64,000 nucleotides of DNA from Macrostomum lignano. Lineage: Eukaryota. Of the stretch, positions 1 through 61,796 are shown one piece after another. Below the pieces are notes generated by a model, which saw only the letters and a list, made by a program, of their open reading frames with translations, had not been told where the DNA came from and searched no databases. The stretch lies in the NCBI GenBank assembly GCA_002269645.1, contig NIVC01000712.1, positions 124,001 through 188,000 on the forward strand. The letters are read 5' to 3'. Position numbers and translations under genes: made by a program. Positions within the stretch are counted from its first letter, which is position 1, and every line of letters begins with the position of its first letter.

Positions 1-155
1 CACCACCCCAATAATACAACAGCCCAAGCTGTGCGCCCCGTAGAACCCACCACCCACACATCCCAGCTTTGGGCCCAATAAAACCCACCAACCCAACAAC
101 ACCCAGTCCAACAACTAAGCCAATGCAAACCAAAGTTCTCTTAAGCGCCGCTCAC

Positions 156-1737
156 CTGCTGCCGCCGCAAGCGGGCCCTCTCCTCGGCCTCCCTGGCCAG
201 GGCATTGTTATAATCGGCCGTGGCCATGTTGATGGCCCGACGGCAGGCCTCTTCAGCCTGGGCCAGCTCGCAGGCGCGCTGGTCCAGCTCGCGCCGTTTC
301 AAATCGTAGAGCCGGTCGGCCTCTTTCTGGCCCCACTTGGCGGCGTCCTTCTCGCGCTGCTGCTGAAGCGACCACTCGCGCAGCTGCTCCTCTTGGAGTC
401 GACGACGAGCCTTGGCGTTGAGATCCTCGCCGTCGAACTTCTGCAACGAGCTGATGGTGCACCGCGGATCGTCGTCATGCACCCTGGCCGGCTTGTCCTT
501 CTTCAGCGCCTCCGGGTCGTACAGGTCCCACTCGCGCCGGGCCTCCGGCTGCTGGTGCAGGGAACGAAACTCGTTCTCGTACATGTTTAGGGCGCGTTTG
601 TCCGCCTGCTGGCGGGTTTCCATCAGAGTGGCGATTTTGTCGTAGCGAACCGCGTCCTGGGCGAAGGCCTCCTCGCGTTCGCGCTCGCGCTGCTCGTGCT
701 GCTTTTTCTCGTCAACCTGCTGCTCGAGGCCTTGGACATCGATCTGGGCAGGAGAAGTACAATGTAAATATTGCAAAGAAATCTTTTACACCGAGATACA
801 TATTTTCATATGCTTAAACAATTTATAGCCAGATGTTGTAGGACTATGTATAGCAAAAATTTTATATAGCATATATTTGATTAAAATTTGCCAGAAGTAT
901 TCAATGTTATAAATTAGCAAAAACAAACTCCATTTTAAATTAAAAATAATTATCATTTGATAGGTATAAATTTTATGTCATTGCCTAGACAGTGACCATT
1001 CTGAAGACGTTTTGAAAGTCTAATGATATTATTATACATATATATATGCAGATATAAAAAAGCAGGAAACTTTTTCATGTTCTTAGAGATTTTATCTTAA
1101 AGTATAGTCTTTATCTGTAATCATAAAAAAATTATGAATAAATGCAAAAAATGCAAAGGTTTTGCATTTTCAGTTTAAAAAATATTTAATAGGTAAACGA
1201 CTAATTCTTTTTTAAGGCATAAGTTTAAAGACTTTTCTGATAGCCACTAGATTTATACCTTACATTTTAGGTATTTCATTTGTATTGTAGAATTTCAATT
1301 CTTAGTTGGAATTTAATTCAGCTTTAAAGCAAATGTCAACTTTTGTATTCGTATCTCCAGTCAGATTCACGTTCTTCGATATTTGTTTGGATTTTCGGAT
1401 AACATAATAGTGTACCAACCAATGTACAATTTATAATATCTAAACATAAACAGACTATCAAGAATCAAGACAATAGTTTTTAGCCACCTACACATATTTA
1501 TAATATTATATTCAATTTGATATGATGATGATAATTAAATTTAGCATGAATAATTAGATTTAATACTTTAGTCTTAGATACAACTATTTCGAATTGTGGC
1601 ATGACACCGAGTTGACTTACTCCAATCTGCCTAACTTTGGCATTGAAAATTCGGCCCTGACGCTGCTGTTCCCGATTGCGACGCCGCTCAATCGCAGCAG
1701 CCTCCTTGCGATCAAGAGGGGTGTCGAGCTTGTACAT
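156..1737 (-). CDS. RIB43A: RIB43A-like coiled-coil ciliary microtubule inner protein (RIBC1/RIBC2 family); first two coding exons, gene continues beyond position 1
   Basis: Exon 1 is 1737-1621 (MYKLDTPLDRKEAAAIERRRNREQQRQGRIFNAKVRQIG, donor GTAAG). Exon 2 is 743-156 (CAG acceptor; IDVQGLEQQV...REWDLYDPEALKKDKPARVHDDDPRCTISSLQKFDGED...; donor GTGAG). Both junctions are phase 0. The motifs match the RIB43A family as I recall it. Confidence 0.9.
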
Positions 1738-12540: not shown

Positions 12541-15500
12541 TCAGACCCGGTCCGCCTTATACTCGTAGCCGCACTCCTGGCCAGCATCGTTGTCAACAGT
12601 CAGCAGACTGGAACTATCAGGCGAGGCCAGCACCAGTAGGTGCGTTGTTGGCGACGGTGTTGATGAGCGAACCGACACGGATTCGAACTCTGGCTCCTCC
12701 CGCCCGCCGCCTAGCTTGTGAACGGGGGTTAATTTAACATTTGGCGACGCTTTCAACGGCTGATGACGACGGCCGCGCAGTGGTCTGTGCGGTGAACATT
12801 TAGCGACACTATTGCCGACATTGCTGTTCTCCTTGTCTTGGCCTCTCATACTAGGGATTATATTGGGGTTGGCGATGCTCTTCACTGCTGTCGCCGCCTC
12901 CGCTGCGGGCTTGTTCAACTTTGAATTCGTCTGCGCGCCAACCCGAAGGAAAGCCGGCAGCTCCAGATTGCGGGCGTCGATTTTGCCGCGCTGATCGTCC
13001 ATTCGGCTGCCCTGAACTCGGGCCAGCAGCTCCACTAGCGAGTCGTCTTTGACGCTGCCTGCGCCAGCAGCTGTATTTGCCGAGGCCGCCATTGGATTCT
13101 TCAATTTCGACAACGACGAGGGGGACGACAGAGTCGCCGATTGCCAGGGCACCGCCGAGGCCGGTCGACGTGGCGACGAAGTCACCGGAATATTCGTCAC
13201 AGACCCGACAGAGGCGGTGGCAGCGATGGGAGTTGAGGTTGGAGTCTGGATAGTTTTTTTGGAGGATAAGATGGTATCGGTGAGTTATGGCGCAGAAACT
13301 GAGGATCTGGGAGGCTGGCCCAGCAACTGAGGATCTGGGAGGCTGGCCCAGCAACTGAGGATCTGGGAGGCTGGCCCAGCAACTGAGGATCTGGGAGGCT
13401 GGCTCAGCAACTGACACTCTGGGAGGCTGGCCCAGCAACTGAGGATCTGAGAGGCTGGCCCAGCAACTGAGGATCTGAGAGGCTGGCCCAGCAACTGAGG
13501 ATCTGAGAGGCTGGCCCAGCAACTGAGGATCTGAGAGGCTGGCCCAACAACTGAGGATCTGGGAGGCTGGCCCAGCAACTGAGGATCTGAGAGGCTGGCC
13601 CAACAACTGAGGATCTGGGAGGCTGGCCCAGCAACTGAGGATCTGGGAGGCTGGCTCAGCAACTGACACTCTGGGAGGCTGGCCCAGCAACTGAGGATCT
13701 GAGAGGCTGGCCCAGCAACTGAGGATCTGAGAGGCTGGCCCAACAACTGAGGATCTGAGAGGCTGGCCCAGCAACTGAGGATCTGAGAGGCTGGCCCAAC
13801 AACTGAGGATCTGGGAGGCTGGCCCAGCAACTGAGGATCTGGGAGGCTGGCTCAGCAACTGACACTCTGGGAGGCTGGCCCAGCAACTGAGGATCTGAGA
13901 GGCTGGCCCAGCAACTGAGGATCTGGGAGACTGGCCCAGCAACTGAGGATCTGGGAGGCTGGCCCAGCAACTGAGGATCTGAGAGGCTGGCCCAACAACT
14001 GAGGATCTAGGAGAATCACTCGCAAAAGACTACAAGTGTTTAAAACTGGCCCGCCCACCAACCTGCAGCTCGCAGACGCCCCCAGAGTCGAAGCAAATCA
14101 GGCCGGAGTTGATGGCGCTCGCCATGCGATTCGCATTCCACTGGCAGTCTTGCAGCAGTCGAGACAGGCCGCTGTGTGAAGGATCTGGAAATTTTTTAAA
14201 TGGATTCTAATGTGTATTATTGCTTTAATTGAAGCCTAGATACTACTCTAAGTAGTGAACATAAATCGGTTCTTTCATAAAAAAAAGGCAAAACTGACAA
14301 TTGAAAATTGCACTCAAACAAATTAGAAGGGCGAATTTCATATTTCTTTCCCAGAATTCTAAGTTAACAGTCGGTATGGTTTTCACCGGCAGCACGGAAT
14401 TCATTAAAAGTACATTTTAAGGACAGAATAAACGGCCTTCAAAAATGATAAAAGCTCAATTTTTTTAAAATTATTTTCATCAACACACTTATAAACTTAC
14501 GACTCATCATTGCTCACGGAATAAAAATAAATAGTAAAGTACGTACGAACTACTCTACAGTAGTTTACTAGTACGCTAAAACACAAAGTCAAATGGGTCG
14601 AAATTGTTAAAATGCAAAAAAATCCGGAGCTGTCATCGCCTGAGCTTTGCGGGCAGGGAGACGAGGCTGGGCCTGCTCGGCCTTTGACGATTTTCGCCAA
14701 ATTTAATGCCATCACAATCTGCATGCACGAATCCATAGGGAAACGATAATTTACTTGGTGCGAGGATAAGATGATTGCAGACATCAGGTGTTAAGACGAG
14801 AAGGATAATTAGAACAATTAGCACAGTGGGAAATTAGTTAAACGCAACTTAGGGCCATCAGGGTGACCAGAAGTAAAGGTAATCCAATACAGGATATAGT
14901 TAATTGGGTCGGGGGGCACCAGGTGTGCGGGTAATTAAATGCGCAAGATAAGATAAATAAGATCACCAGATGTAAAGATAATCAAATACACCAGATAAAG
15001 ATAATTAGGGCTACCAGGTGTGAAGGCAATTAAATACGCCAAAGAAAGATTAGGGCCACCAGGTGTGAAGTTAATCAAAACACGCCAGATAAAGATAATT
15101 AGGGACAACAGGTGTAAATGCAAGTAAATACACCAGATAAAGATAATTCAGTTAGGAAGACCAGGTGTGAAGGTAATTAAACACGGTAGAAAAGATAATT
15201 AGGGACACCAGGTGTGAAGATAACGAGGGACACAGTATGAAGATAATAACAAATAAGTAAAATACGAGATGGATATTATACTCAGATACATCACTTGCAT
15301 ACTACGAGCGTAATAGTAATAAACAGAAACTCTACGATAATTCGAGTTCAACTCGGAAAGTGTGAGAACACTCACCAGTCAGCAGATCCTCAGCTGGCAA
15401 CAGTGCAAACTGGCGCCTATGATCCGCTCGGGTCAGCCGCCTGGCGTTCCAGGGTACAGCGGCGGCTGCGGCGGCGGCAACAGAGCCCGATGACTCAACA

Positions 15501-24737: not shown

Positions 24738-26029
24738 CTAAGCGGCTTCATCGCTATTCTGCCGATAATCGGAGCCAACATTGCCAGTGAACTGGCAGTT
24801 TGGGAGCACGTCTTCGAAATTGTAACAGTCGATATTGACCGGCTGGCTGGTCCACGGGTGTCGCTCGACCTCGCAGATGCCAGCGCGAAGCTTCGGATCT
24901 ACCTGGAGCATCACGCGGAGCAGGCGGCCTGAATAGAGGGGAATAAAAATAGATTATAGTGATCCCAATTGAAGTCTGATGATCCCAATTAAAGTCTGGT
25001 GATCCCAATTGGAGTCTGGTGATCCCAATTGGAGTCTGGTGATCCCAATTAGAGTCTGTGATCCCAACCGAAGTCTGGTGATCCCAATTAGAGTCTGGTG
25101 ATCCCAATTACAGTCTGGCGATCCCAATTGAAGACTGGTGATCACGATTAAACAATGTGATCCCGATTGAAGTGTGAATGTGATGATCTCAATTAAAATT
25201 CGATTTACCCAACGGTAAGTGATCCCAATCGAATCAGTGATCCCAATCGAACCCGTGATCCCAATCGAACCCCAGTGGTCAAGTGATCCCAATCGAACTC
25301 TGTGGATCCCCAAATGGCAAGAAGTGCTGCACACGCACTAAGCTGAGGAGACGGTTTCCACTGCGGTTTAAGCACGCCAGCAAGAGTCTCGTCCACGTCA
25401 AAGAATGGATTTTCTCCAAACACCAGAGTGTACAGAGTAACGCCCAGACTCCAAACGTCCGCCTCAGGCCCAAAATAGGGATGCCCCTGCAGAATCTCCG
25501 GGGCGCAGTATTCCATAGTGCCGCAGAACACCGAGAACGGTCTGTCTGGCGATACAAAAGCCGCGGCGCCGAAATCGATCAGCATCAGGCAGAATCGCTC
25601 GTCTAAGATGACGTTCTCGTCTTTCAGATCGCGATGAGCGATGCCGCGAGAGTGCAGATAGGCTACGGCCGAGGCCATCTGTCTGAACATGTAGCTGGCT
25701 AGGGGCTCGTCTAAGCTGGGATTGCGATCGATGAACTCGAATAGGTCCATGCCGAGGCCGTGCCGGGGCATCACCAGCTCGTAGTAGCGACGGCTTTCGA
25801 GTGCGTCTAGTAGGGGCACGATGTTGGGGTGGCTGACCGACTGCAGGATGGCCGCCTCCCTGTTACAGCGGCGGATTGATCAAGTAGCAGGCTTATTATA
25901 GGGGCTGACCTGTGGCCTAGATACATAGATAGATAGGTAGATAGATGGGTAGATAGGTAGATCGATAGATAATTAGGTAGATAGATAGATAATTTGGTGG
26001 ATAGATAGATAGATAGATGGATAATTAGG

Positions 26030-26069
<40 letters not shown>

Positions 26070-26121
26070 TAGGTAGATGGATAGATAATTTGGTGGATAG
26101 ATAGATAGATGGATAATTAGG

Positions 26122-26189
<68 letters not shown>

Positions 26190-29100
26190 TAGGTAGATAG
26201 AAGCCTCACCTAGGTACGAGTCCGCCGCCCAGACTCTCCGGCCTCTCCATCAGCTGGTGAGCGGCCAGCTTAGATTTGCGCACAAATTTCACAACAACCT
26301 GAGCCCCATCGGAGCGCCGGACGGCGGCTTTAACGTAGCCGTAGGCGCCGCGGCCCAGGTGAAGCGTCACCTCGTAGCGGGAGGACAGCTCGTCTTCGGC
26401 TTCAGCTTCAGCTTCCGCCTCATCGTCAGGTGATTGAGCGGCGGCGGCGTCGGTTGAAGCGACAGACTCGTTCACTTCGGCAGCGGCTGCTTGTGGCGAT
26501 TTTCTAATAATAGAAGCTTCTCCTTCATCAACCGGTTTGGAGGCTGAATTTGGGTAAAATATTGAGTCTACATTGGTGGAATTCAAGTTGGCATTACATT
26601 TCAGTGTCGCTAACGCCACTAGATCATAAACCAGTGAACTAGTAAACCAATAAACTAGTAAACCAGTGAACTAGTAAACGAGTAAACTAGTAAACCAATA
26701 AACTAGTAAACCAGTAAACTAGTAAACCAGTAAACTAGTAAACCAGTAAACTAGCAAACAGTAAACCAGTAAACCCACCATAGTCAAGTTTATCACTACC
26801 ACTAGGTAGCCAAATTAGTATTATTTTAATAACCTTCGCACCTCGTTGGATCGAGTCTTCAATCCCTTCCCCGTCATCGCATCCATCGTCGCTGATGCTA
26901 GCAGCTTGCTCAGGCCAATCGTCGTCCTGCCTAGACAGCCAGACACAGAGCAGTCGCCTACCGCCAGTCAGTTCAATACGTTTCAAATGATAAGCCACTG
27001 GTACTGCGGTACCGGAACTGTGCAGTGCCTCCCCTGTGTAGCTGCCCGAGCCTGCAGCTGCCAATGCCGGGCAGTGGCGGGCTGAGAAACCCGGCAACAC
27101 GGAATCGATTGGCTCGCCTACTAATCGCTTGGCCGATTGGCCTAGCAACAGCTTGGCTAGCAACGGGTGAACGCTGTGCACCTGCGGAGTTGTTGGCAAA
27201 CATTTTTATCGATTCGTGTCGGATGGGTTTTATTTGTTGGTTATGGGCGATTCTCGGAATGGTTTATGGGCGATTTTTGGAATGGTTTATGGGCGATTCT
27301 TAGAATGATTTATGGGCGATTCTTGGAATGGTTTATGGGCGATTCTTGGAATGGTTTATGGGCGATTCTTGGAATGGTTTATGGGAGATTCTTGGAATGA
27401 TTTATGGGCGATTCTTGGAATGGTTTATGGGCGATTTTTGGAATGGTTTATGGGCGATTCTTAGAATGATTTATGGGCGATTCTTGGAATGGTTTATGGG
27501 CGATTCTTGGAATGGTTTATGGGCGATTCTTGGAATGGTTTATGGGAGATTCTTGGAATGATTTATGGGCGATTCTTGGAATGGTTTATGGGCGATTCTT
27601 AAAATGGTCTATGAGCGATTCTTGGGATGGTTTATGAGCGATTCTTGCAATGGTTTATGGGCGATTCTTGCAATGGTTTATGGGCGATTCTTGCAATGGT
27701 TTATGGGCGATTCTTGCAATGGTTTATGGGCGATTCTTGCAATGGTTTATGGGCGATTCTTGGAATGGTTTATGGGCGATTCTTAAAATGGCTTGTGGGC
27801 GATTCCTAAAATGGTTTATGGGCGATTCTTGATCGATTATGGGCGATTCTTAATCTGTTATGGGCATATTCTTGATGGTTTTGGGCGATTCTTGATTAAT
27901 TATGGAGGTTATAGGTTATAGGATAATTGAGGTGTTTTATGGGCAATTTTCCAAATGTCTAATCAGGTATTCTTAGAAAGTTTAACAACAGGACTTCAAT
28001 AAGATTGCATAAGAATTGAAGAAAAAACCAAACTGTTAGCAGCCAATAAACCTACTGTCAATGCCGATTTGCCATCATCCGCAGCATCCTCGGCCACCGT
28101 CATCAAGCCCGACACGTTGCAATAGAATGTGAGCGTGGCAATCAGGCTGCCCGGCTCCGACCTGTCAACCCGAACCGAGCACGGATGATCGCAGCCGGCC
28201 GCCAACACCGACGCGGCAAACGTGGCGCTGGTTTCGCCTTTAGGCGGCGGCCGGCAGCCAGGCAGTAAATTGAATAGCGGCCGGCCAGTTGTGTCCGGGG
28301 GCAGCAGGCGGGCGGCCGGGCCAGTAGGCGGGCTGGTCACGATGCCGTCTGAGTCAGCGGTCAGACAGGCCACTACACAGTGCACAGGTTCAAGGATCAC
28401 CAGCGCGCTGGCGTCACCCGGGGAGACGGACTGGGTATTGGAGGATTGAGGGGGGGGGCGTGAGATGAGTGCTTAATATTTGTAAGGACTGGATATAGGG
28501 GGAGAGAATGCCCAAGAGAAGGAGAGTGTGGAAATGAGAGGGGAGGAGAAAGGAAGAGGGACTGGAAAATTAAAGAGCGATAAAAAGAGAAGCGGACAAG
28601 GGATAGAAAAAGGAGGCGAAGAGAAAGGAAGAGGGAAAAAAGAGAAGCGGGAAGAAGGATAGGGAGAGGGAGGGGAAAGACAGGGAAGGAGAGGTAAAGT
28701 GGGTAGAGAGGGGAGAGGGAGAGGGTGAAAGGGATAGAGAGAAAGGGGAGAGGGGAGAGGGGGAAGAGGGGAGAGAGGGGAGAGACGGGAGAAGGAGGAT
28801 AAGAGGAAAAGAAAAGAGAAGAGGGGAAAGAGGAAAGAGAGGAATATAAGAGAAGGGGAGAGGGAGAATGCGGGAGGGGAGAGGGAGTGAAAAAGGAAGA
28901 GGGTTAAATGGATAGAGTAGTGGAGGGTCATGAAGAGAAGGGAGACAGAGAGGGTAAAGGGAAGGGAGTAGAGAAAATAGGTCACTACTAACTAATTTCG
29001 AGTAATATATAATATTCTAATAAACTCAATAAACTTCACAAGCCATCACTGTCCTTAGGCAGTAAATAAGCAGACAGCTTAGGTGAGTAACCAGGTGAGC

Positions 29101-46917: not shown

Positions 46918-47571
46918 AATGGTGCTCTATGCCTATATGCAAGCCAAATCCTAATGTAGGCCTACCTACAATACAACTACAATACATACAACTATGTGGG
47001 GCTTAAAAGTGGGGCCTACAGCTATCAGTATACAACTTGTGAAGATCTATTTGACGAATTGAACTGACCCTTCATTGCCTTTAAAAGTAGGACGCAATGA
47101 GAATACTTAATATCCTAGAGTCATATAGACCAAGCAAGCAGATTCAGCATGCCTAGTAGAAAACTAAAAATGAAGTTAACCTATCAATTTAAACTTGCGC
47201 GAGAGAATTCCTGGCAAGCACGGCGAAAGCGTTTATAATCAATTGTTCAATTTTCTTTGTGATGTAGAAACAAATTAAAGCCAAATCAATCAGATTCATT
47301 AGGGTCAATAGGAGTCCAGGTTCCCAGAATTTTAATTTGTTAGTAAGCTGAGATAGTTAACGTGATGTGAACACTGATAGAATTGATCAGCTGAGAGACA
47401 TAGTGATCGAGTACGGGCAAATGTTCGGTGAAAAAAACTCGGCGGGCAATTCACTCGCAGGCAACACTCACAGGAAAAATTCACTTCAGGCAAATCAAGG
47501 ACCACTCAAGGACCTTGGGGCAAGCAAATCTCGGCGGGCAGTTTGTCTGCGGGCAATTCTCATGGACCCAA

Positions 47572-48200
47572 GCGAAAATACGCGTCTTCCTGCTTACTGC
47601 CGGCCTTAAATGTCTAAGCAACTAGCTGTTAATGTTAAATCTAAAGTTCATACATTCACATGTAGTTGATTCCGTTCAGTCCAAATTCCGCAGACTAATC
47701 AATCAGCAGTCTAGCGGCTATCGCGGTTAAAAGTTTTTTAAGTTCAACTGAGTCCACAATAATCTGCAATACGTACGTTGATAGCATAAATAGAAATGAG
47801 TTGTGCGTAGAGGGGATCTCCATAGCATCGAAAAAGCACCCCCACAGCTCGAGAAAAATTTTATTTTAAAATCAAAGTCGAAAAAAAACAAAATGTTGAG
47901 AGTCTGCGACTGCTTCGACCTCTCAACTCGTCGTGTTTGCCATTTTGATGCTTCTTGTGGCCGTCCTCGCTCAGATAACGCTCGATCTTTTGTTGATTGT
48001 TGCATTTGAAGCGAAAGTTGACAATTTCTTTAAGGATCGATTATGTATCTGTTTATTACGAAAATTTAGTATCAGTGAGAATGTAACGCTTTAGCAAGGT
48101 TGCAAATTTGCAGTTACAAAGGTTGCAGTTGCAAGGTTGCAAGTTTCCCTCCAGAAAATCAATCAAAGAGGTGACTAAAATATAAGGTAGACAAAGAGAC
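47572..48200 (+). pseudogene. 5' part of an inverted, inactivated paralog of the secreted-protein gene at 54535-55790 (promoter, exon 1 and exon 2 relics)
   Basis: 47572-48200 aligns with the reverse complement of ~55510-56268. The exon 1 relic 47893-47974 is frameshifted and its donor is changed (CAG|ATAACG vs CAG|GTAGCG). TATATAAA is replaced by CCTTAAA. The exon 2 relic (~48146-48186) is partly lost. No exon 3 copy was found. Confidence 0.8.
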
Positions 48201-48204
48201 AGCT

Positions 48205-51200
48205 CGGCGCCCACAGACAGCAGGGGCGCTCACAAAGAGACAAAGGCTCCCACAAAGAGACAGGGGCGCCCACAAAGAGACAGGGGCGCCCACAAAGAGA
48301 CAGGGGCGCCCACAAAGAGACAGGGGCGCCCACAAAGAGACAGGGGCGCCCACAAAGAGACAGGGGCTCCCACAAAGAGACAGGGGCGCCCACAAAGAGA
48401 CAGGGGCGCCCACAAAGAGACAGGGGCGCCCACAAAGAGACAGGGGCGCCTACAAAGAGACAGGGGCGCCCACAAAGAGACAGGGGCGCCCACAAAGAGA
48501 CAGGGGCGCCCACAAAGAGACAGGGGCGCCCACAAAGAGACAGGGGCGCCCACAAAGAAACAGGGGCGTTCACCAAGAGACAGGGGCGTTCACCAAGATA
48601 CAGGGGCGTTCACCAAGAGACAGGGGCGCCCACAAAGAGACAGGGGCGCCCACAAAGAGACAGGGGCGCCCAAAAAAGTGACAGGGGCGCCCACAAAGAG
48701 ACAGGGGCATTCACCAAGAGACAGGGGCGTTCACCAAGAGACAGGGGCGTTCACCAAGAGACAGGGGCGCCCACAAAGAGACAGGGGCGCCCACAAAGAG
48801 ACAGGGGCGCCCACAAAGAGACAGGGGCGCCCAAAAAAGTGACAGAGGCGCCCACTAAGAGACAGGGGCATTCACCAAGAGACAGGGGCGTTCACCAAGA
48901 GACAGGGGCGCCCACAAAGAAACAGGGGCGCCCACAAAGAAAAAGGGGCACCAAAAAAAGAAAACAGGGGCGCCCACCAAGAGACAGTGGCGCCCACTAA
49001 TTAGAGACAGGGGCGCCCACAAAGAGACAGGGGCGCCCACCAAGAGACAGGGGCGTTCACCAAGAGACAGGGGCGTTCACCAAGAGACAGGGGCGTTCAC
49101 CAAGAGACAGGGGCACCCACAAAGAAACAGGGGCGCCCACAAAGAGACAGGGGCGCCCACAAAGAAACAGGGGCGTTCACCAAGAGACAGGGGCGTTCAC
49201 CAAGAGACAGGGGCGTTCACGAAGAGACAGGGGCGTTCACCAAGAGACAGGGGCGCCCACAAAGAGACAGGGGCGCCCAAAAAAGTGACAGGGGCGCCCA
49301 CAAAGAGACAGGGGCATTCACCAAGAGACAGAGGCGTTCACCAAGAGACAGGGGCGCCCACAAAGAAACAGGGGCGCCCACAAAAAAAAGGGGCACCAAA
49401 AAAGAAACAGGGGCGCCCACCAAGAGACAGTGGCGCCCACTAATTAGAGACAGGGGCGCCCACAAAGAGACAGGGGCGCCCACCAAGAGACAGGGGCGTT
49501 CACCAAGAGACAGGGGCGCCCACAAAGAAACAGGGGCGCCCACAAAGAGACAGGGCCGCCCACAAAGAGACAGGGGCGCCCACAAAGAGACAGGGGCTCC
49601 CACAAAGAGACAGGGGCGCCCACAAAGAGACAGGGGCGCCCACAAAGAGACAGGGGCGCCCACAAAGAGACAGGGGCGCCCACAAAGAGACAGGGGCGCC
49701 CACAAAGAGACAGGGGCGCCCACAAAGAGACAGGGGCGCCCACAAAGAGACAAGGGCGCCCACAAAGAGACAGGGGCGCCCACAAAGAGACAGGGGCGCC
49801 CACAAAGAGACAGGGGCGCCCACAAAGAGACAGGGGCGCCCACAAAGAGACAGGGGCGCCCACAAAGAAACAGGGGCGTTCACCAAGAGACAGAGGCGTT
49901 CACCAAGAGACAAGGGCGCCCACAAAGAAAAAGGGGCACCAAAAAAGAAACAGGGGCGCCCACAAAGAGACAGGGGCGCCCACAAAGAGACAGGGGCGCC
50001 CACAAAGAGACAGGGGCGCCCACAAAGAGACAAGGGCGCCCACAAAGAGACAGGGGCGCCCACAAAGAGACAGGGGCGCCCACAAAGAGACAGGGGCGCC
50101 CACAAAGAGACAGGGGCGCCCACAAAGAGACAGGGGCGCCCACAAAGAAACAGGGGCGTTCACCAAGAGACAGGGGCGTTCACCAAGATACAGGGGCGTT
50201 CACCAAGAGACAGGGGCGCCCACAAAGAGACAGGGGCGCCCACAAAGAGACAGGGGCGCCCAAAAAAGTGACAGGGGCGCCCACAAAGAGACAGGGGCAT
50301 TCACCAAGAGACAGGGGCGTTCACCAAGAGACAGGGGCGTTCACCAAGAGACAGGGGCGCCCACAAAGAGACAGGGGCGCCCACAAAGAGACAGGGGCGC
50401 CCAAAAAAGTGACAGAGGCGCCCACTAAGAGACAGGGGCATTCACCAAGAGACAGGGGCGTTCACCAAGAGACAGGGGCGCCCACAAAGAAACAGGGGCG
50501 CCCACAAAGAAAAAGGGGCACCAAAAAAGAAACAGGGGCGCCCACCAAGAGACAGTGGCGCCCACTAATTAGAGACAGGGGCGCCCACAAAGAGACAGGG
50601 GCGCCCACCAAGAGACAGGGGCGTTCACCAAGAGACAGGGGCACCCACAAAGAAACAGGGGCGCCCACAAAGAGACAGGGGCGCCCACAAAGAAACAGGG
50701 GCGTTCACCAAGAGACAGGGGCGTTCACCAAGAGACAGGGGCGTTCACCAAGAGACAGGGGCGTTCACCAAGAGACAGGGGCGCCCACAAAGAGACAGGG
50801 GCGCCCACAAAGAGACAGGGGCGCCCAAAAAAGTGACAGAGGCGCCCACTAAGAGACAGGGGCATTCACCAAGAGACAGGGGCGTTCACCAAGAGACAGG
50901 GGCGCCCACAAAGAAACAGGGGCGCCCACAAAGAAAAAGGGGCACCAAAAAAGAAACAGGGGCGCCCACCAAGAGACAGTGGCGCCCACTAATTAGAGAC
51001 AGGGGCGCCCACAAAGAGACAGGGGCGCCCACCAAGAGACAGGGGCGTTCACCAAGAGACAGGGGCACCCACAAAGAAACAGGGGCGCCCACAAAGAGAC
51101 AGGGGCGCCCACAAAGAAACAGGGGCGTTCACCAAGAGACAGGGGCGTTCACCAAGAGACAGGGGCGTTCACCAAGAGACAGGGGCGTTCACCAAGAGAC

Positions 51201-53245
51201 AGGGGCGCCCACAAAGAGACAGGGGCGCCCACAAAGAGACAGGGGCATTCACCAAGAGACAGAGGCGTTCACCAAGAGACAAGGGCGCCCACAAAGAAAA
51301 AGGGGCACCAAAAAAGAAACAGGGGCGCCCACCAAGAGACAGTGGCGCCCACTAATTAGAGACAGGGGCGCCCACAAAGAGACAGGGGCGCCCACCAAGA
51401 GACAGGGGCGTTCACCAAGAGACAGGGGCGCCCACAAAGAAACAGGGGCGCCCACAAAGAGACAGGGGCGCCCACAAAGAAACAGGGGCGCCCACAAAGA
51501 AAAAGGGGCACCAAAATAGAAACAGGGGCGCCCACCAAGAGACAGTGGCGCCCACAAAGAGACAGGGGCGCCCAAAAAAGTGACAGGGGCAACCACTAAG
51601 AGACAGGGGCGCTCGCGAAGAGACAGGGGCGCCCAAAAAAGTGACAGGGGCGCCCACTAAGAGACAGGGGCGCTCACCAAGAGACAGGGGCGCCGACAAA
51701 GAGACAGGGGCATTCACCAAGAGACAGGGGCGTTCACCAAGAGACAGGGGCGCCCACAAAGAGACAGGGGCATTCACCAAGAGACAGAGGCGTTCACCAA
51801 GAGACAAGGGCGCCCACAAAGAAAAAGGGGCACCAAAAAAGAAACAGGGGCGCCCACCAAGAGACAGTGGCGCCCACTAATTAGAGACAGGGGCGCCCAC
51901 AAAGAGACAGGGGCGCCCACCAAGAGACAGGGGCGTTCACCAAGAGACAGGGGCGCCCACAAAGAAACAGGGGCGCCCACAAAGAGACAGGGGCGCCCAC
52001 AAAGAAACAGGGGCGCCCACAAAGAAAAAGGGGCACCAAAATAGAAACAGGGGCGCCCACCAAGAGACAGGGGCGCCCACAAAGAGACAGGGGCGCCCAA
52101 AAAAGTGACAGGGGCAACCACTAAGAGACAGGGGCGCTCGCGAAGAGACAGGGGCGCCCAAAAAAGTGACAGGGGCGCCCACTAAGAGACAGGGGCGCTC
52201 ACCAAGAGACAGGGGCGCCGACAAAGAGACAGGGGCATTCACCAAGAGACAGGGGCGTTCACCAAGAGACAGGGGCGCCCACAAAGAGACAGGGGCATTC
52301 ACCAAGAGACAGAGGCGTTCACCAAGAGACAAGGGCGCCCACAAAGAAAAAGGGGCACCAAAAAAGAAACAGGGGCGCCCACCAAGAGACAGTGGCGCCC
52401 ACTAATTAGAGACAGGGGCGCCCACAAAGAGACAGGGGCGCCCACCAAGAGACAGGGGCGTTCACCAAGAGACAGGGGCGCCCACAAAGAAACAGGGGCG
52501 CCCACAAAGAGACAGGGGCGCCCACAAAGAAACAGGGGCGCCCACAAAGAAAAAGGGGCACCCAAATAGAAACAGGGGCGCCCACCAAGAGACAGTGGCG
52601 CCCACAAAGAGACAGGGGCGCCCAAAAAAGTGACAGGGGCAACCACTAAGAGACAGGGGCGCTCGCGAAGAGACAGGGGCGCCCAAAAAAGTGACAGGGG
52701 CGCCCACTAAGAGACAGGGGCGCTCACCAAGAGACAGGGGCGCCGACAAAGAGACAGGGGCATTCACCAAGAGACAGGGGCGTTCACCAAGAGACAGGGG
52801 CGCCCACAAAGAGACAGGGGCGCCAACAAAAAAGACAGGGGCGCCCACAAAGAGACAGGGGCGTTCACCAAGAGACAGGGGCGCCCACAAAGAAACAGGG
52901 GCGCTCACCAAGAGACAGGGGCGCCCACAAAGAGACAGGGGCCCCAAAAAAGTGACAGGGGCACCCACTAAGGGACAGGGGCGCTCACCAAGAGACAGGG
53001 GCGCCCACAAAGAAACAGGGGCGCTCACCAAGAGACAGGGGCGCCCACAAAGAGACAGGGGCGTCCAAAAAAGTGACAGGGGCAACCACTAAGAGACTCA
53101 CCAAGAGACAGGGGCGCCCACAAAGAAACAGGGGCGCCCACCAAGAGACAGTGGCGCCCACTAATTAGAGACAGGGGCGCCCACAAAGTGACAGGGGCGC
53201 TCACCAAGAGACAAGGGCGCCGACAAAGAGACAGGGGCGCCCAGC
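48205..53245. repeat. 20-bp satellite (GGGGCGCCCACAAAGAGACA)n, ~250 units, with a 525-bp higher-order repeat
   Basis: Continuous array; near-identical blocks start at 51249, 51774 and 52299. Confidence 0.97.
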
Positions 53246-53254
53246 CTGAGAAGT

Positions 53255-53460
53255 GGGCTTCAGCGTGCTTGTATGGCTACATCGACGATCTCGCCCTGCT
53301 GTCTTTAACGGTCAAAGGCACCCAATGCTGATAGCTATATAGACAAGCTGATTTCTGTGCAGCGAGTCGGCCTGCTGGTCAGCACGAAGAAGGCACATAT
53401 AGTAAGTTCTGCGCGTCGGATGGCGAATCGAGGCTAGGCTTCATTTTGTGCCAACGGGGT
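53255..53460 (+). mobile_element. Fragment of non-LTR (RTE-like) reverse transcriptase
   Basis: GGC TAC ATC GAC GAT CTC GCC CTG CTG TCT = GYIDDLALLS (YxDD motif) at 53275, followed after a frameshift by a RVGLLVSTKK-like segment. Confidence 0.7.
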
Positions 53461-53470
53461 GATGGACTAA

Positions 53471-53875
<405 letters not shown>

Positions 53876-53899
53876 TTTCTATCTATAGATATATTTACG

Positions 53900-54110
53900 A
53901 GTGTCCTTTAAGCTGACAAGGGCATCTTTAACCGTTAAGACACCAAGGGCAAGATCATACCTATAAGCACGCTGAGCCGCCTCCATGTTATTGGAGTCGA
54001 CCCACGAGCCGTAGCAGCTGAAAGCCATTTCGCATTTAAAAAACTTACAGTGCATTTAACTGAATATCTGAGCTACTCGAATGAGTCTACTGACAAATTG
54101 CACGATCGAA
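53900..54110 (-). mobile_element. More degenerate copy of the same RT-containing fragment
   Basis: Aligns with 57060-57260 (e.g. TGAGTCTACTGACAAA, AAGCACGCTGA, TAACCGTTAA shared). Confidence 0.6.
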
Positions 54111-54534
54111 TTTTGTTTGATGGCCCGTGTCCTCTGGTGTACAGTTATGGCTGCTGTCAGTCTGATGGTCTCACTGTCAGTTGTTTTGAATGTATTTTTA
54201 AAAGCGCAGCGCACAATGTACCCTAAACTACTGCGAGCGTATTTGCATGTTGACTGACAAAATTTTCTACAATACAACCCGGATACGAGCTTGTACTTTT
54301 ACCAGCGTAAATTCAAGTTTAGTAAATCTATTCGACGCTTTGTATAGGGCACGCAAGGTCAGACTGTTCGTCAAGAATCATTCAACATGCATAATATGCG
54401 TTGCTAGATTAGTTGTTTTCTGACCACTCTGCTTTCAAACGATATATTTAATCTTTAGATGTCATCTATAATTTGTGATCGTCTTCGGCCGTTCCAATAT
54501 CATGTTTCGTTGTCAATATGCAGCGCGTTCACGT

Positions 54535-55790
54535 TTATTCAGCGGGCTCGCCAAGCAGCATAGACTTGTACAGAGCATAGTAGCAGCGCCTGTTGCACCG
54601 ATCATCCGATCTGTCGCAGTCGCAAGCGGACGGCGTGCCGCCAAATTGAGCCGAATAGGTAGCCAACATATAGCTGGCCGGCACCTGCTCCTTCAGCATG
54701 TCGTAGCTCAAGCCACGCGGGCAGCGGTCGTTTACGATGCAAGGCCTGAACACCATTTCCAGCTGTCTCATATTCATCTCTCGTTGACCGCTCTGGTGAA
54801 GAAATTATACACGAGAAAGATGTATCAATCTGGCTAAGAAAACGGTGCTAGTATGGGCGCTTTCAAAACTAACTTGCTGAGCCAGTAATAACAGTCGCCA
54901 AAGTCTCTGATGTGTTACCAATTTCGCTGGAAGAGCGTGCTACTATTGATAGGGTCTCTCCTGCCTCTATATGGGCGCCCCTGTCTCTTGTTGGGCACCC
55001 CTGTCTCTTGGTGGGCACCCCGGTCTCTTGGTGGGCACCCCGGTCTCTTGGTGGGCACCCCGGTCTCTTGGTGGGCACCCCTGTCTCTTGGTGGGCACCC
55101 CGGTCTCTTGGTGGGCACCCCTGTCTCTTGGTGGGCACCCCGGTCTCTTGGTGGGCGCCCCTGTCTCTTGGTGGGCACCCCGGTCTCTTGGTGGGCGCCC
55201 CTGTCTCTTGGTGGGCGCCTCTGTCTCTTGGTGGGTGCCTCTGTCTCTTAGTGAGCACCACTGTCTCTTGGTAGGCGCCCCTGTCTCTTGGTGGGCACCC
55301 CTGTCTCTTAGTGAGCACCACTTGTCTCTTGGTAGGCGCCCCTGTCTCTTGGTGGGCACCCCTGTCTCTTAGTGAGCACCACTGTCTCTTGGTAGGCGCC
55401 CCTGTCTCTTGGTGGGCACCCCTGTCTCTTAGTGAGCACCACTTGTCTCTTGGTAGGCGCCCCTGTCTCTTGGGAGGCGCCCCTGTCTCCTGGTGGGCGC
55501 CCCTGTCTCTTGGTTTACCTTAGTCACCTCTCTGATGGATTTTCTGGAGGGGTTGATGGGCGGCACGGACCTCTGCGTACGCCACTGGATTACCTAGCAA
55601 CCTTGCTCAAGCGTCACATTCTCACAGATACTGGACTTTCGTAAGTAAACAGATACCGAATCGATGCTTAAAGAAATTGTCAACTGTCGCTGCAAATGCA
55701 ACATCAACATTGCGCTACCTGAGCGTGGACGGCCACAAGAAGCATCGCGATGGCAAACACGACGAGTTGAGGTCGCACGAGTCGCAGCAT
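54535..55790 (-). CDS. Small secreted cysteine-rich protein of unknown family, 3 exons, 134 aa
   Basis: Exon 1 55790-55719 (MLRLVRPQLVVFAIAMLLVAVHAQ, signal-peptide-like, CAG|GTAG). Exon 2 55593-55519 (TAG|VIQWRTQRSVPPINPSRKSIREVTK|GTAAAC). Exon 3 54792-54535 (TTTCTTCACCAG|SGQREMNMRQLEMVFRPCIVNDRCPRGL...CDCDRSDDRCNRRCYYALYKSMLLGEPAE*). All junctions are phase 0. AATAAA overlaps the stop codon, and a TATA-like box lies upstream. Confidence 0.75.
54965..55515. repeat. 20-bp satellite (GTGGGCACCCCTGTCTCTTG)n, inverted relative of 48205-53245, in intron 2 of the secreted-protein gene
   Basis: About 27 units; the reverse complement matches the large array with variant positions. Confidence 0.95.
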
Positions 55791-56109
55791 TTTTTGATAT
55801 TTTTGACTTCGATTTTAAAAATCAAACTTTTCACTGAGGGGATTGCTTTCTTCGATGCTGAGGTCCTCTCCACGCACACATCATTTCTATTTATGCTTTT
55901 TAAGCCCTAACGTTTGAAGGGAAAATTTTTGACCAATTTTAATTTAAAGTGGCAATTACTTTTTTGACTTACAGCTGAGACGAAAATTGCAACTAAATGG
56001 TGTAGTTATTGTGCACCCAGTTGAACTTAAAAAATTAACCGATAGTCGATAAAATGGATATTGATTAGTCTGCGGAAGTTGGACTGAACGGGATCAACTA
56101 ATTGATGAG

Positions 56110-56265
56110 CTTTCCATTCTGCATCAACAGCCAGTTGCTCAGAGATTTATATAGGGCAATTAAAAGCAGGAAGTCGCATATTTTCGAACTTTCCATTCTG
56201 CATCAATCGCCAGTTGCTCAGACATTTATATAGGGCAATTAAAAGCAGGAAGTCGCATATTTTCG
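56110..56265 (-). promoter_or_regulatory. Tandemly duplicated (2 x 79 bp) putative core promoter, each unit with a TATATAAA box
   Basis: Minus-strand TATATAAA at 56153-56146 and 56232-56225, ~360-440 bp upstream of the ATG at 55790. A CT|GTAAGT donor in the leader suggests a 5' UTR intron. Confidence 0.55.
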
Positions 56266-56334
56266 CTTTAAAGCTAGCGTCCAGACATTGTATTCAGCAA
56301 AATTACCCACAATCTAAAGGTGCAATCAAACAAT

Positions 56335-56872
<538 letters not shown>

Positions 56873-56874
56873 CT

Positions 56875-57260
56875 ACGTAGCAACTCCTCACGAACATCGC
56901 TAGAATCAGACCGCTGAGGTAGATGAACTGCTGAAATCACAGGGAGATTCGTCTTTCATCACGTCGGCACAAAAATAAAGCCTAGGCCTCCATGGGCTCG
57001 ATTCGCCATCCTAACCGCCGCACAGCAATCAGCTTGTCTATGGCTATCATTGGGCGCCTTTGACCGTTAAAGACAGCAGGGCGAGATCGTCGTTGTAGCC
57101 ATGCATACAAGCACGCTGAAGTCCGCTGCTCGGGTTTGTGTCCACCCACGTGTCACAGCAGCAGAAAGCCATCGTTGCATTAAATAAACTTGAATTTAAC
57201 TGCATATGGGTATCTGGCGTAAGTCTAATGAGTCTACTGACAAACTGCACAGATTTGTTC
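56875..57260 (-). mobile_element. Fragment of non-LTR (RTE-like) reverse transcriptase between two (TATC)n arrays
   Basis: GYNDDLALLSLTVKGAQ (YxDD), then downstream [16 protein letters not shown], which resembles the F-x-YLG motif after RT domain 7; frameshifted. Confidence 0.72.
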
Positions 57261-57264
57261 GTGC

Positions 57265-57547
<283 letters not shown>

Positions 57548-57911
57548 GCGGCAGTCAACATCGGCCATTGCAAAATCAGTCGGAGCTGCCCTGCAGGACG
57601 TACATGTACGTAGACTGAGGGCGGTGTTCTGATCCTGGCGTTGGTCGAAACCATGCATACGCTCGTATAATCTCACAACGCTAAAAGCCGTAACGCTGAC
57701 GGAGTCAATTGCGACAAGCTGTGCATGTGCATGTGCATGATGTAATATTGTCGGCGAAAACTTTCAGCACAAACATTAAATTATTCTAAGAGTTTTTTAA
57801 TCGTGCTCAGCGGACAGTGGCGGCGCATCACCTCTGAATGGGGGGGGGGGCAGTTGGTCAACCGGGCCTGCAGCCTACCCGCACCCCGTTCGCCATCACT
57901 GTCGGTGGACA

Positions 57912-57947
57912 CAAGGACTTCTAGACTAGCTAGTCTAGAAGTCCTTG
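57912..57947. other. Perfect 36-bp palindrome CAAGGACTTCTAGACTAGCTAGTCTAGAAGTCCTTG
   Basis: Self-reverse-complementary with no loop. Confidence 0.95.
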
Positions 57948-58266
57948 GTGCACATACAGATGATCAGACTGTATAAAAGTCCGTCAGTCGTGTCAGACAA
58001 CTGCTCGTGGAGTCATTTTTAAATAAGATAAAATTTGTTTTAGTCTGCATGGTAAATTGTCTTCTATATCGCTTCTGTTGTGTCTGAAAATACAATAGGC
58101 AATACTCTTTATATTGAAATTGGCTATTTAAAAGATAGACAGCTGTGAATAGGTTTTTAATTTGTCTGATGCTATAGTCTATTTCTTATTCCGGCACTAA
58201 TTTAAATGACAAAAATTTTACCTCTCCCGAGGCCATGAATGAAGAATACTAGCCTAGTATGTAATA

Positions 58267-58456
58267 CGAGGGGTGTTTTAAAAGTAACGAGATTTTGTTA
58301 GAACTTTAGACTGAATGAACTTATGAACTTGAAATTTTATCCAACAATTTTATACATTAAATACATTAACTTTATTTTGAGCCTTGTATAGCTGTGTAAT
58401 CGTTGATGATGATGAAAGTCCCCTCGAATTTTAGAAAGACCCCTCCCTCTACCTCG
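58267..58456. mobile_element. Short mariner-derived MITE/deletion derivative
   Basis: TA|CGAGGGGTGTTTTAAAA at the left end; imperfect inverted copy ...TTTTAGAAAGACCCCTC...CCTCG|TA at the right end. Confidence 0.55.
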
Positions 58457-59417
58457 TACAATACAATTTAATTGATCTAGGCGGTATAACATTGGACGGC
58501 AATGTTGAACTTATAATAGAATACCTGATTCGTCTCTGTTACTTTAAGTTTGATTACATTAATTTACAATACAAAGAATAAAACTCCCTCAATTCCCTAA
58601 AAATACCTAGGGCTAGGCTAGGCCTAACTAAACACTGATTGTCCAATGTCCAAAGTTACATAAACTTAAACTGAACTTACCGAAGCAGTGAATGCTTTGG
58701 CTATTATTGGATGCCTGAATTCTGTTGTATACTTTTCTTTTTTATTATAATAATAGGCCTAGGCCTAACTAGGCCTAGATTTATTCTGTCATGCTAAAAT
58801 ATGTAGGCCTATTCTTTCCTATTCTATGCTAGCCTGTAATACTAGTAGGCCTACCTAGTATTGGTGGTTTTTATTTGCATGATAAATAAGCAAGAATCAG
58901 ACATCATTTTTTCAAATGATTAGGGGCCTACTAACCTAAGATGTGATACTTGTATAAAATTAGAGGCTTTTATATTTTAAATTGAACTTAAGGTAAAGAA
59001 TAGGCCCCTAAGTTCTAGGATTTAAAATTAAAATATAACACATTAATAACAATATATCAATAAAATCAATATATATATATATATATATATAATATAATAG
59101 ATTTTATTCCTAGGCCTATCTGCCTATGGCTATAGTACTAGTAGGGCCTAACAGTTTTTATAGGCCCTATTAGGTTAGGCCTACTATATAAGTTTCACAT
59201 TACAATAGGCTTATCCTATATTAATATTTTATAAGTTTTTGGAATAGGACCTATATAATATAATACTAATTAGGCCTACGGGTCAGTTAAGATCTCAATC
59301 TCAATCATCTAAATCTTGGCACTTTTTTCAATTTTGATTTCAGTTTTGAGATCTCAAAAAATGTCAAGATTTGCAATTATATAATTATTTGTAACTATAA
59401 TATTATTTGGTTATGGC

Positions 59418-59836
59418 TAGAGGTTGGATAAGATCTTGATTGTCAAAATATCAATACTTTTTTGAAACTCAATCTTGGTTTTAAGATCTCAAAAAAGTCA
59501 AGATTTGTGACTAGGAGACTAGGACCATTGTATTGATGACTGTGACTGACTATTATCATATATTTATTTTTTATTTACATCAAGTTACTAACGTTAACAA
59601 GCTTAGTATTATATAATAATTGTTTTTCCTTCTACAATATTTTATCATCATTATACACATACACATTTAGCAAATAATATTATTAGCCCTGATGGATAAA
59701 ATAGTATAAATAAGTATATTAGATAAGTCTAGATGCTAATTAGGCTTCATCTTAAATCTTGATTGATTCTCAACTATCTTAAAGCATAGATCTCAAGTTT
59801 AAAAAATCTCAAAAATGTGGCATTATCTAACCCTTA
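59418..59836. mobile_element. Degenerate hAT-type MITE
   Basis: TAGAGGTTGGATAAGATC ... ATTATCTAACCCTTA termini resemble those of 60373-60770; flanks GTTATGGC / GTTATAGT match at 6/8. Confidence 0.5.
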
Positions 59837-60068
59837 GTTATAGTGATTTTTTAGTTTGTTTTCTGATATTATTTTTAAGTTTGAGTTAGTTCTGCAACAT
59901 AATAGTAGAAAATAATGTCTGGCCAAAAGGGATAAAAATGGTATCAGAAAATTTTCTAGCCTCTAGCTCTTATCTACTGCTTTATCTTTTACTTTATCTA
60001 TTGCTTTATATATCACTATATCTACTGCTATATATATTACTAAGTTTATTGCCATATCTGTTGCTATA

Positions 60069-61796
60069 CAAGGTGGATCCATTGAAATGTCACATTTTCA
60101 TTTTTTGTTTTTATTTTTTTGGTTTTTGGCATATAAAAGCTAAGCACATAGGGTTTTGCTTTTATATCTGTATTTGACCTGTGAGATAAGTTTTACAGAA
60201 ATTGCTCATACTATGTCTGCATATGAGGAGATCTGTTAAAAGATCTTTGAGAAACTTCAAGCAGGAGAGCCTCCTATATCAATTTCTTGGCATCTTGGAA
60301 TTTTGAAAAACCAAGTCTATTGAACCAAGCAACTTTTTGTGGTAACTGGTAGTGTTAAGGCATGTCATGGAGTAGAGGTCAGACGGGATTGAAATCTTCG
60401 GGTGGGATCGGAATTGGGAAAATTTTTTTCTCGGGATCGGGATCAGGATCAGGATTCGGGAATTGGGATCAGGTCTTTTAGTGTATTGTCCATGTAAAGT
60501 TAAACAAAATTGAGAAAAGATTGTCAAGATCAAGAAGTAAAACACAACAAAATTGATATGAAGTTTTGTAACCAACAAAGTAAATAATGTAATGAGTACA
60601 AGTTAAAGCAAAATACCTTCAAGTAATCACTAATTCTATAAATTATTAATTGAAAGACCTGTTCCCGAATCTCGAATTTTTTAGGGTCAGGATTCTGGTC
60701 TTGCGGAAATTCAATTCTCCTCGGGATCTCGAGATTTCGGGATCAGGGTTGGGATCTCGTCCAACCTCTATCATGGAGGTGGGTATAGTCATACTGCTCA
60801 CAGGGACCAAGTATTGGTCATTTCTTCTATTGGCAGCTACATTGACAAAATTTTTTTCATCTAAGAAGAAGTGCACTAGGTGTAGATACAACCAGCTAAG
60901 CAGTTGCTTGTCTTGTATCTTTCTAATGAATTTCTAGGCTTCTAAACAAGAAATGCCAACAAACTAGAAACTACTAACTCTGTTTTTCACTCTAATATCA
61001 TCTTTGAGCAGTTGGTTCATTGTCTTGTTACTCTTATACACTATTCCATAGTCCCAAAAGCTGTTGAGAACTTTGTCTTGGGTTCCTACAGATGCACATT
61101 TTTACAGCCTTGATGACATTTTTTGTGGCTATGTAAGTATGTAAAAGATATCCCAGACAATGCTCGTATGGTGCAGTGCAGCAAAAATCTTGCTTCTGTC
61201 ATGGTACTAGGGGTCATCAGCTCTGGACAAAAGTGCCCCCCCCCCCAATTTTCATTGACCCTAGTGCTCAGCTCAATGCTGTTGGCTGGGGCCTATCAAG
61301 AGCTGCTGCAAAACAAAGTGCTGCCATGGCTAAATCAGCACTACCCAAGTGGCCAATATGTATTCTAGCAAGATGGTGCACCTGCACATACTTTGACAAC
61401 CATGCTGACCTTCCTATCAAAGAATTTTGCAAGTTATTGGCCAAAAGACTTCTGGCCACCTTTGCCACTAGATCTTAATCCACTAGATTATTATTTCTAG
61501 GTGCAAATGGAGTGTGAGGTATGTCGCATATCTCACCACAATCTCAAGTTGTTGCACACCTCCATCTCAAAAGCATGTGATAAAATCCCATCAGCTGAAG
61601 TGCAAAAAGCTGTTGGTAGATTTCAAGCTGGGCTGTAGAAAATTGTAGAAGTAGATGGCAGTTACATTGAATAAATTTGTTCCTGATAGTGTTGATCATT
61701 TACCAAATGCATTTTTGCTCTGCACTTTTGCTTGTTTGAATCAAGTCAAAATATACTCAGTACTAAAAAGTGTGACCTTTCAATGGATCCATCTTG
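60069..61796 (+). mobile_element. Degenerate maT-family (DD37D) Tc1/mariner transposon, interrupted by a hAT MITE
   Basis: TA|CAAGGTGGATCCATTGAAATGTCACA and TGTGACCTTTCAATGGATCCATCTTG|TA TIRs. The transposase relic has VMVLGVIS and F*QDGAPAHT...WPPLPLDLNPLDY (37 residues between the 2nd and 3rd D) and ends GSYIE* at 61674. It is ~1.32 kb without the insert. Confidence 0.9.
60373..60770. mobile_element. hAT-type MITE, 398 bp, inserted in the maT transposase
   Basis: TIRs TAGAGGTCAGACGGGATT / GATCTCGTCCAACCTCTA; perfect 8-bp TSD TCATGGAG (60365-60372, 60771-60778); subterminal CGGGATC repeats. Confidence 0.9.

Follow-up and report, generated by a model that had tools for sequence, protein, structure and literature searches.

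A short gene for a small secreted six-cysteine protein, buried among satellites in the genome of the flatworm Macrostomum lignano, raises the question of how it is spliced, whether it is new, and what its product could do. The window, that is, the whole stretch of 64,000 nucleotides that was analysed, is identical to NIVC01000712.1 (assembly GCA_002269645.1), and the gene occupies a span of 1256 nt on its minus strand (window 55790..54535) inside the locus L003, which corresponds to 48535..61790 reversed. An earlier note, made from the sequence alone, had read this span as a hidden three-exon gene encoding 134 aa and had proposed a novel neuropeptide, toxin or gland secretion. As detailed below, the gene is very probably the already annotated two-exon gene Mlig032223, coding for a small secreted six-cysteine helical protein, for which we infer a folded gland or epithelial secretion as the most likely role.

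Identity and structure of the gene

We compared the conceptual products of the span with deposited proteins. By exact-sequence look-up, the direct join of the first and last exons of the earlier note (109 aa) is residue-for-residue PAA56480.1/PAA78014.1, deposited as 'hypothetical protein BOX15_Mlig032223g2/g1' (UniProt A0A267FXT4). Because it has been annotated in GenBank since 2017, the gene was wrongly labelled 'hidden', and the claim of novelty for the gene has to be withdrawn: it is not new, having stood in GenBank/UniProt as an uncharacterised protein since that year. With the 134-aa model as the query, matches were found in Macrostomum lignano proteins only. The best of these was the 108-aa BOX15_Mlig007900g1 (PAA73435.1, P0001), encoded by a third genomic copy, which reads ...VAVHAQ|SGQQEMNM..., exon 1 being fused directly to the last exon.

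Coding exon 1 (window 55719..55790, minus; 72 nt) encodes the signal peptide MLRLVRPQLVVFAIAMLLVAVHAQ, which is the N-terminus of PAA56480.1/PAA78014.1, and ends at the phase-0 donor CAG|GTAGCG. It is followed by a single GT..AG intron of 926 nt, also in phase 0 (54793..55718, minus), and by coding exon 2 (54535..54792, minus; 258 nt including the stop), the third exon of the earlier note, which opens at the acceptor TTTCTTCACCAG|AGC, carries the whole six-cysteine domain and has homologues in the domain exons of the paralogs. The two outer exons and their phase-0 junction are therefore in the sequence as had been described, and their join is the deposited protein. In an exhaustive exon-chain search, the deposited 109-aa protein was obtainable only from positions 1-72 + 999-1256 of the gene span. 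The two-exon model is annotated in all three genomic copies, and in each of them the deposited proteins can only be obtained as two exons. The GenBank annotation of this assembly was built from a genome-guided RNA-seq transcriptome (StringTie/TACO/TBONE with mapped de novo transcripts), and its pipeline dropped only those alternative transcripts that had an identical CDS and differed in the UTR alone (PMC5730564).

The two flanking signals that had been reported were also found. A TATA-like ATAAATA (55888..55894, minus), read directly within GCATAAATAG at 55896..55887, lies about 100 nt 5' of the ATG and is kept in other copies; the AGCATAAATAGAAATGA block is the same in the gene of the window, in its L001 counterpart and in the degenerate inverted copy described below. 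At the other end, an AATAAA hexamer, likewise read directly (54534..54539, minus), overlaps the TAA stop. The former would be a candidate promoter element and the latter a putative working poly(A) signal.

UniProt A0A1I8FJV9 (P0002, 162 aa) was considered as an alternative N-terminus and rejected, because it is a chimera predicted ab initio on the older ML2 assembly. In this model an upstream ORF (window 56890..57110, minus), which in the window is broken by a stop codon close to 57110, is fused to the domain exon, and the C-terminus is frameshifted.

A family found in Macrostomum lignano

When 1.84 billion representative proteins were searched exhaustively with phmmer, nine were recovered at E<=0.001. 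Eight of them are from M. lignano; the ninth, P0010, is a repetitive protein of 567 aa (E=1.7e-4). E-values to the paralogs ranged from 6e-14 to 8e-5, and a profile search of a 5.8-billion-protein collection recovered M. lignano proteins only. Leaving P0010 aside, the family is seen only in M. lignano, a restriction that could partly reflect gaps in the sequence data for other macrostomids. The window protein shows significant homology to its relatives across the cysteine domain, where the paralogs are 22-39% identical to it in the alignment, and the positions C42, C48, P78, C81, R92, C94, Y96 and A97 are invariant.

We observed at least seven paralog groups (Mlig032223/007900, 031165, 029205, 001682/030151, 014137/003397/013351, 014068 and A0A1I8G7C1), each with two or three almost identical copies in the genome, which is what the partly duplicated genome of M. 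lignano would lead one to expect (PMC5730564). Like the window protein, the paralogs have a signal peptide, the pattern RPC(I/V)..xCP...ECxC..ERCxRxCYYA and a helical domain on one phase-0 exon. Unlike it, they have variable C-terminal tails, some of them basic or prohormone-like, and some consist of two domains, the second lacking Cys IV and V; Mlig029205 is such a two-domain protein and A0A1I8G9Z9 a further form of this kind. The tail of P0004 ends ..SKR-FFGFQG and that of P0007/P0013 ..QQRFPGKRSV, and those of P0015, P0006 and P0005 end ..RRKRWGLRRK, ..EEWRRRR and ..FPDKRR, respectively; a prohormone-like tail is missing from the window protein.

The exon plan is also shared. In P0004, P0005 and P0006, a signal-peptide exon of 48-66 nt is followed by exons of 252-327 nt that carry one domain each, all in phase 0; Mlig031165 and Mlig001682 each consist of a signal-peptide exon (48-60 nt) and a single domain exon, and Mlig029205 has three exons with one domain each. 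The window gene follows the same plan of a signal-peptide exon, a phase-0 intron and a whole domain per exon. In the family alignment, the conserved helix before Cys I starts 5-15 residues past the leader, with no linker. Between the deposited Mlig032223 (PAA56480.1/PAA78014.1) and the two-exon product of the window there is no difference, whereas the 134-aa model adds 25 residues.

A 75-nt cassette in the intron

These 25 residues come from a segment of 75 nt (window 55519..55593, minus) that the earlier note had taken as exon 2. All three segments of its model are present and splice to the stated 134 aa; what failed is the middle one, an intronic cassette that is unsupported as an exon in view of the deposited 109-aa protein, the plan of the paralogs, its weak acceptor, its divergence and its expectation by chance. 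The basic linker with an RK site, described as part of the protein, falls wholly inside it. That the main product is still the three-exon protein of 134 aa, in which the signal peptide and the cysteine domain would be separated by a basic linker of 25 residues bearing this RK site, is in our view very unlikely. The cassette is stop-free, in phase and flanked by an AG and a good GT donor (AAG|GTAAAC), and its frame is open in all three genomic copies, the diverged L001 copy included, but it is missing from every deposited protein recovered with the 134-aa model, the RNA-seq-derived annotation joins the signal-peptide exon to the domain exon in three copies out of three, and a linker exon was found in none of the paralogs examined. 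A cassette isoform, if assembled, should persist as a separate protein, because only transcripts with an identical CDS were removed from the annotation.

The sequence of the cassette points in the same direction. Its acceptor, GCAAGGTTGCTAG, is purine-rich and weak, in contrast to the true acceptors of the family, which are pyrimidine-rich and end in ..CAG. Between the window and the L001 copy, the cassette is 96.0% identical, with 3 substitutions in 75 nt, all three nonsynonymous and none synonymous, and it is the most diverged segment inside the gene. Over the same comparison, coding exon 2 is 98.8% identical (3 substitutions in 258 nt, 2 synonymous and 1 nonsynonymous) and the flanking intron segments are 98.3-98.4% identical (2 and 3 substitutions). 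The divergence of the cassette is consistent with non-coding sequence, on counts that are small. Within the 926-nt intron we counted 185 AG..GT cassettes of 30-300 nt that are stop-free and phase-0/phase-0; 16 of these lie outside the satellite. When the 204-nt unique 5' part of the intron was shuffled, at least one such cassette appeared in 90% of trials. The 75-nt cassette is no more than chance supplies. We conclude that it is intron sequence; a rare isoform containing it may exist.

Satellites, duplicate copies and history of the locus

Using Tandem Repeats Finder, we observed that the window is dense in mini- and microsatellites. The intron itself contains a 20-bp minisatellite (54972..55514) of about 27 units, reading CCAAGAGACAGGGGYGCCCA on the gene strand. 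In L002 the gene copy exceeds that of the window by 60 nt, the length of three units, and in the L001 copy there is about one unit.

A partial copy of the 5' half of the gene, inverted and degenerate, lies at 47573..53243 (plus), with promoter-like, exon-1-like and intron-like sequence followed by the 20-bp array. By blastn, 47573..48785 is 76-77% identical to the gene at 56186..54960. The array of 5 kb (48191..53243) belongs to the same 20-bp repeat family as the gene intron and corresponds to the 'intron' of the inverted copy. In that copy the donor reads AT instead of GT and indels break the leader frame, so that we take it to be a pseudogene. Unit counts across the copies, about 1 in L001, 27-30 in the window and L002 and about 250 in the pseudogene, therefore indicate that the satellite has expanded.

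Further fragments surround the gene. A 79-bp tandem duplication with CCCTATATAAAT, a strong TATA-like motif, lies at window 56107..56265 (minus), 320-470 nt 5' of the ATG; it is kept in other copies (L001 5528..5686) and in the inverted pseudogene (47570..47650, plus), and could serve as a distal promoter or simply be a repeat element. About 2 kb 5' of the L001 gene, at L001 3802..3990 (plus), we observed a frameshifted domain-exon-like fragment (RPCIIWNAYCQRSINYDMLK...), and at the matching place of the window (57144..57250, minus) only a 3'-flank-like piece is left, beside (AGAT)n arrays; both appear to be left over from an old tandem duplication. Truncated convergent remnants are also present downstream of the gene in L001 and L002. 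Taken together, the pseudogene, the exon-like fragment and the downstream remnants indicate a history of local duplication and decay at this locus.

Elsewhere in the window, Pfam searches identified a RIB43A coding exon (141..776, minus; E=3e-67), an exon with a GoLoco motif (12541..13200, minus; E=3e-9) and the catalytic domain of a protein kinase, spread over two or more exons (25205..26619, minus; E=9e-39). Several other long ORFs of the window are merely translated minisatellites.

Leader, cysteines and predicted fold of the protein

The cysteine core C-x5-C-x32-C-x-C-x6-C-x3-C, on which the earlier reading was built, was confirmed from the sequence, as was the signal peptide ending VHA|Q. 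In a feature-based check, the leader has a charged n-region with two Arg, a 13-residue hydrophobic core (maximum Kyte-Doolittle, KD(11) = 3.35) and V-H-A at -3..-1, in keeping with the V-x-A pattern at -3/-1, and an equivalent leader is present in all paralogs. Secretion would follow from this leader, probably with cleavage after VHA. The mature product would then have 86 residues, 9.9 kDa, a pI of 6.4 and an N-terminal Gln, with pyroglutamate as a possible form of that end.

AlphaFold2 gave a pLDDT of 75 without an alignment; with the 12-sequence family alignment, it gave a pLDDT >90 over residues 31-109, a pTM of 0.71 and four helices (residues 7-45, covering the leader and helix 1, then 54-60, 63-74 and 88-104). 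The protein is thus predicted to form a four-helix domain with three disulfides, in which the helices are modelled confidently and the pairing of the cysteines is putative. C83 and C90 (Cys IV and V) are jointly missing from the second domains of the two-domain proteins P0005, P0011 and P0018, and this joint loss, which counts as one evolutionary event, suggests a local bridge between Cys IV and V. The sole dibasic pair of the two-exon product, R92-R93, lies between Cys V and VI in the conserved C-x3-C helix, and no G-K/R amidation motif was found in this product.

On these features, expression would proceed as follows. The minisatellite-swollen phase-0 intron of 926 nt would be removed in one step, and the 109-aa pre-protein would enter the ER co-translationally and be cut after VHA. 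The mature chain would fold oxidatively into a disulfide-locked four-helix domain, to be secreted as a soluble extracellular unit that would act as a whole and not as the precursor of a short peptide.

Possible functions

Taxon-restricted secreted families commonly supply reproductive, defensive or signalling proteins. We consider the window protein to be a soluble extracellular protein, most likely a lineage-specific gland or epithelial secretion with a reproductive, defensive or signalling role; a folded hormone or pheromone ranks second and a saposin- or WAP-type activity last. The classical neuropeptide-precursor reading is weakened by the protein sequence. A signal peptide is present by the feature-based check, and the two-exon product contains neither short peptides flanked by mono- or dibasic sites nor a Gly amidation donor. 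Lacking processing and amidation motifs, it is therefore unlikely to be a short-neuropeptide precursor.

A different proposal is that the domain is itself a folded peptide hormone or neurohormone, similar to CHH/ITP or eclosion hormone in size, helicity and number of disulfides, released by neurosecretion and acting on a receptor. Its 86-residue mature chain, signal peptide, putative three disulfides and predicted helical fold would suit such a role, and the C-terminal dibasic or Gly-dibasic motifs of paralogs (KR-FFGFQG in P0004, RFPGKR in P0007, RRRR and KRR in others) are typical of prohormone processing and amidation, so that part of the family may have a hormone-like role. The window protein itself, however, has no processing or amidation motif, Pfam, PDB and Foldseek comparisons gave no sequence or structural likeness to any hormone family, and at least seven paralog groups, tandem two-domain forms among them, fit secreted effectors or gland proteins better. 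We regard the hormone proposal as unlikely. In a broader form that we hold to be similarly doubtful, the family would be structurally new and restricted to Macrostomum, and its members could be folded peptide hormones or pheromones of a class not yet described from flatworms, acting for example between mating partners.

The remaining rival, membership of the saposin-like or WAP families and hence a membrane-active antimicrobial or a protease inhibitor, is extremely improbable. It takes its origin from the automatic UniProt names 'Saposin B-type domain-containing' and 'WAP domain-containing' carried by P0005, P0006, P0012 and P0015, with the saposin label on one paralog, and six cysteines with a helical fold are superficially saposin-like. 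The two names are mutually inconsistent and look like false positives of the cysteine pattern; they are unsupported, because Pfam, PDB-sequence and Foldseek searches gave no match. Even at E<=10, the SapB (SapB_1/SapB_2) and WAP profiles of Pfam matched none of the 12 family members, the cysteine spacing departs from the saposin pattern, and with Foldseek against the PDB, which includes saposins and WAP domains, the best match was unrelated (E=4). The WAP four-disulfide core has eight cysteines and four disulfides, against six cysteines and a predicted helical fold here.

A gland or epithelial secretion is thus our preferred reading. M. lignano is transgenic and RNAi-tractable, and function is therefore directly testable. 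No unusual mechanism is indicated so far. Starting from an ORF of 80 aa, an exon for a signal peptide and a pattern of cysteines, the unaided reading of the sequence arrived at a true spliced gene, and the same reading over-fitted an extra in-frame cassette, a type of feature that satellite-rich introns yield by chance. The interest that is left lies in an unnamed, taxon-restricted family of secreted, helical, cysteine-rich proteins with no detectable structural relative, which is not surprising in kind. Eight Mlig gene identifiers searched in the full text of the literature were not found, nor were six of them in the searchable supplementary text of PMC5816591, PMC12896417, PMC12732829, PMC7336406 and PMC5977470, the last of which is a seminal-fluid screen; a search for literature on Macrostomum cysteine-rich secreted proteins or neuropeptide precursors found nothing relevant.

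Comparison with known families

The earlier note had been unable to match the cysteine spacing to the CHH/ITP, eclosion hormone, ShK, neuroparsin or insulin families, and this stands by Pfam, PDB-sequence and Foldseek comparison alike. Against Pfam at E<=10, the 134-aa model and 12 family sequences gave no real matches, only noise such as RhoGAP (E=0.05-0.09). Sequence searches of the PDB, run once on the protein alone and once on the family profile, returned only OBP4 (6jpm), from the profile, at a non-significant E=0.87. Foldseek, which the earlier note had suggested, was run on the AlphaFold model, in which the signal peptide is counted in helix 1; no characterised relative was found, with nothing below E=2 in the PDB and BFVD.

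CHH/ITP/MIH and eclosion hormone are secreted helical domains of about 60-90 residues with three disulfides, so that the window protein resembles them in kind only. The arthropod CHH/ITP/MIH and eclosion hormone proteins differ from it in cysteine spacing, and the protein is no member of these groups: for CHH/ITP/MIH, no match was found to the Pfam Crust_neurohorm profile at E<=10 or with Foldseek. Membership of the insect odorant-binding proteins was likewise not indicated, with no match to Pfam PBP_GOBP and OBP4 as the only PDB sequence returned. The saposin-like proteins (SAPLIP) share with the window protein a small secreted helical bundle and six cysteines, and differ from it in cysteine order and spacing. 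A CART-like pattern (C-x5-C...C-x-C...) was also considered. CART is a small beta-rich knot with a different cysteine pairing, and for this reason, together with the lack of support from any search, the link was rejected.

Lineage-specific, helical, disulfide-rich proteins also serve as water-borne pheromones, as in Aplysia attractin and the Euplotes pheromones. These pheromones and the Macrostomum seminal-fluid candidates (PMC5977470) are, like the family described here, taxon-restricted, small, secreted and cysteine-stabilised, and would offer a functional analogy only.
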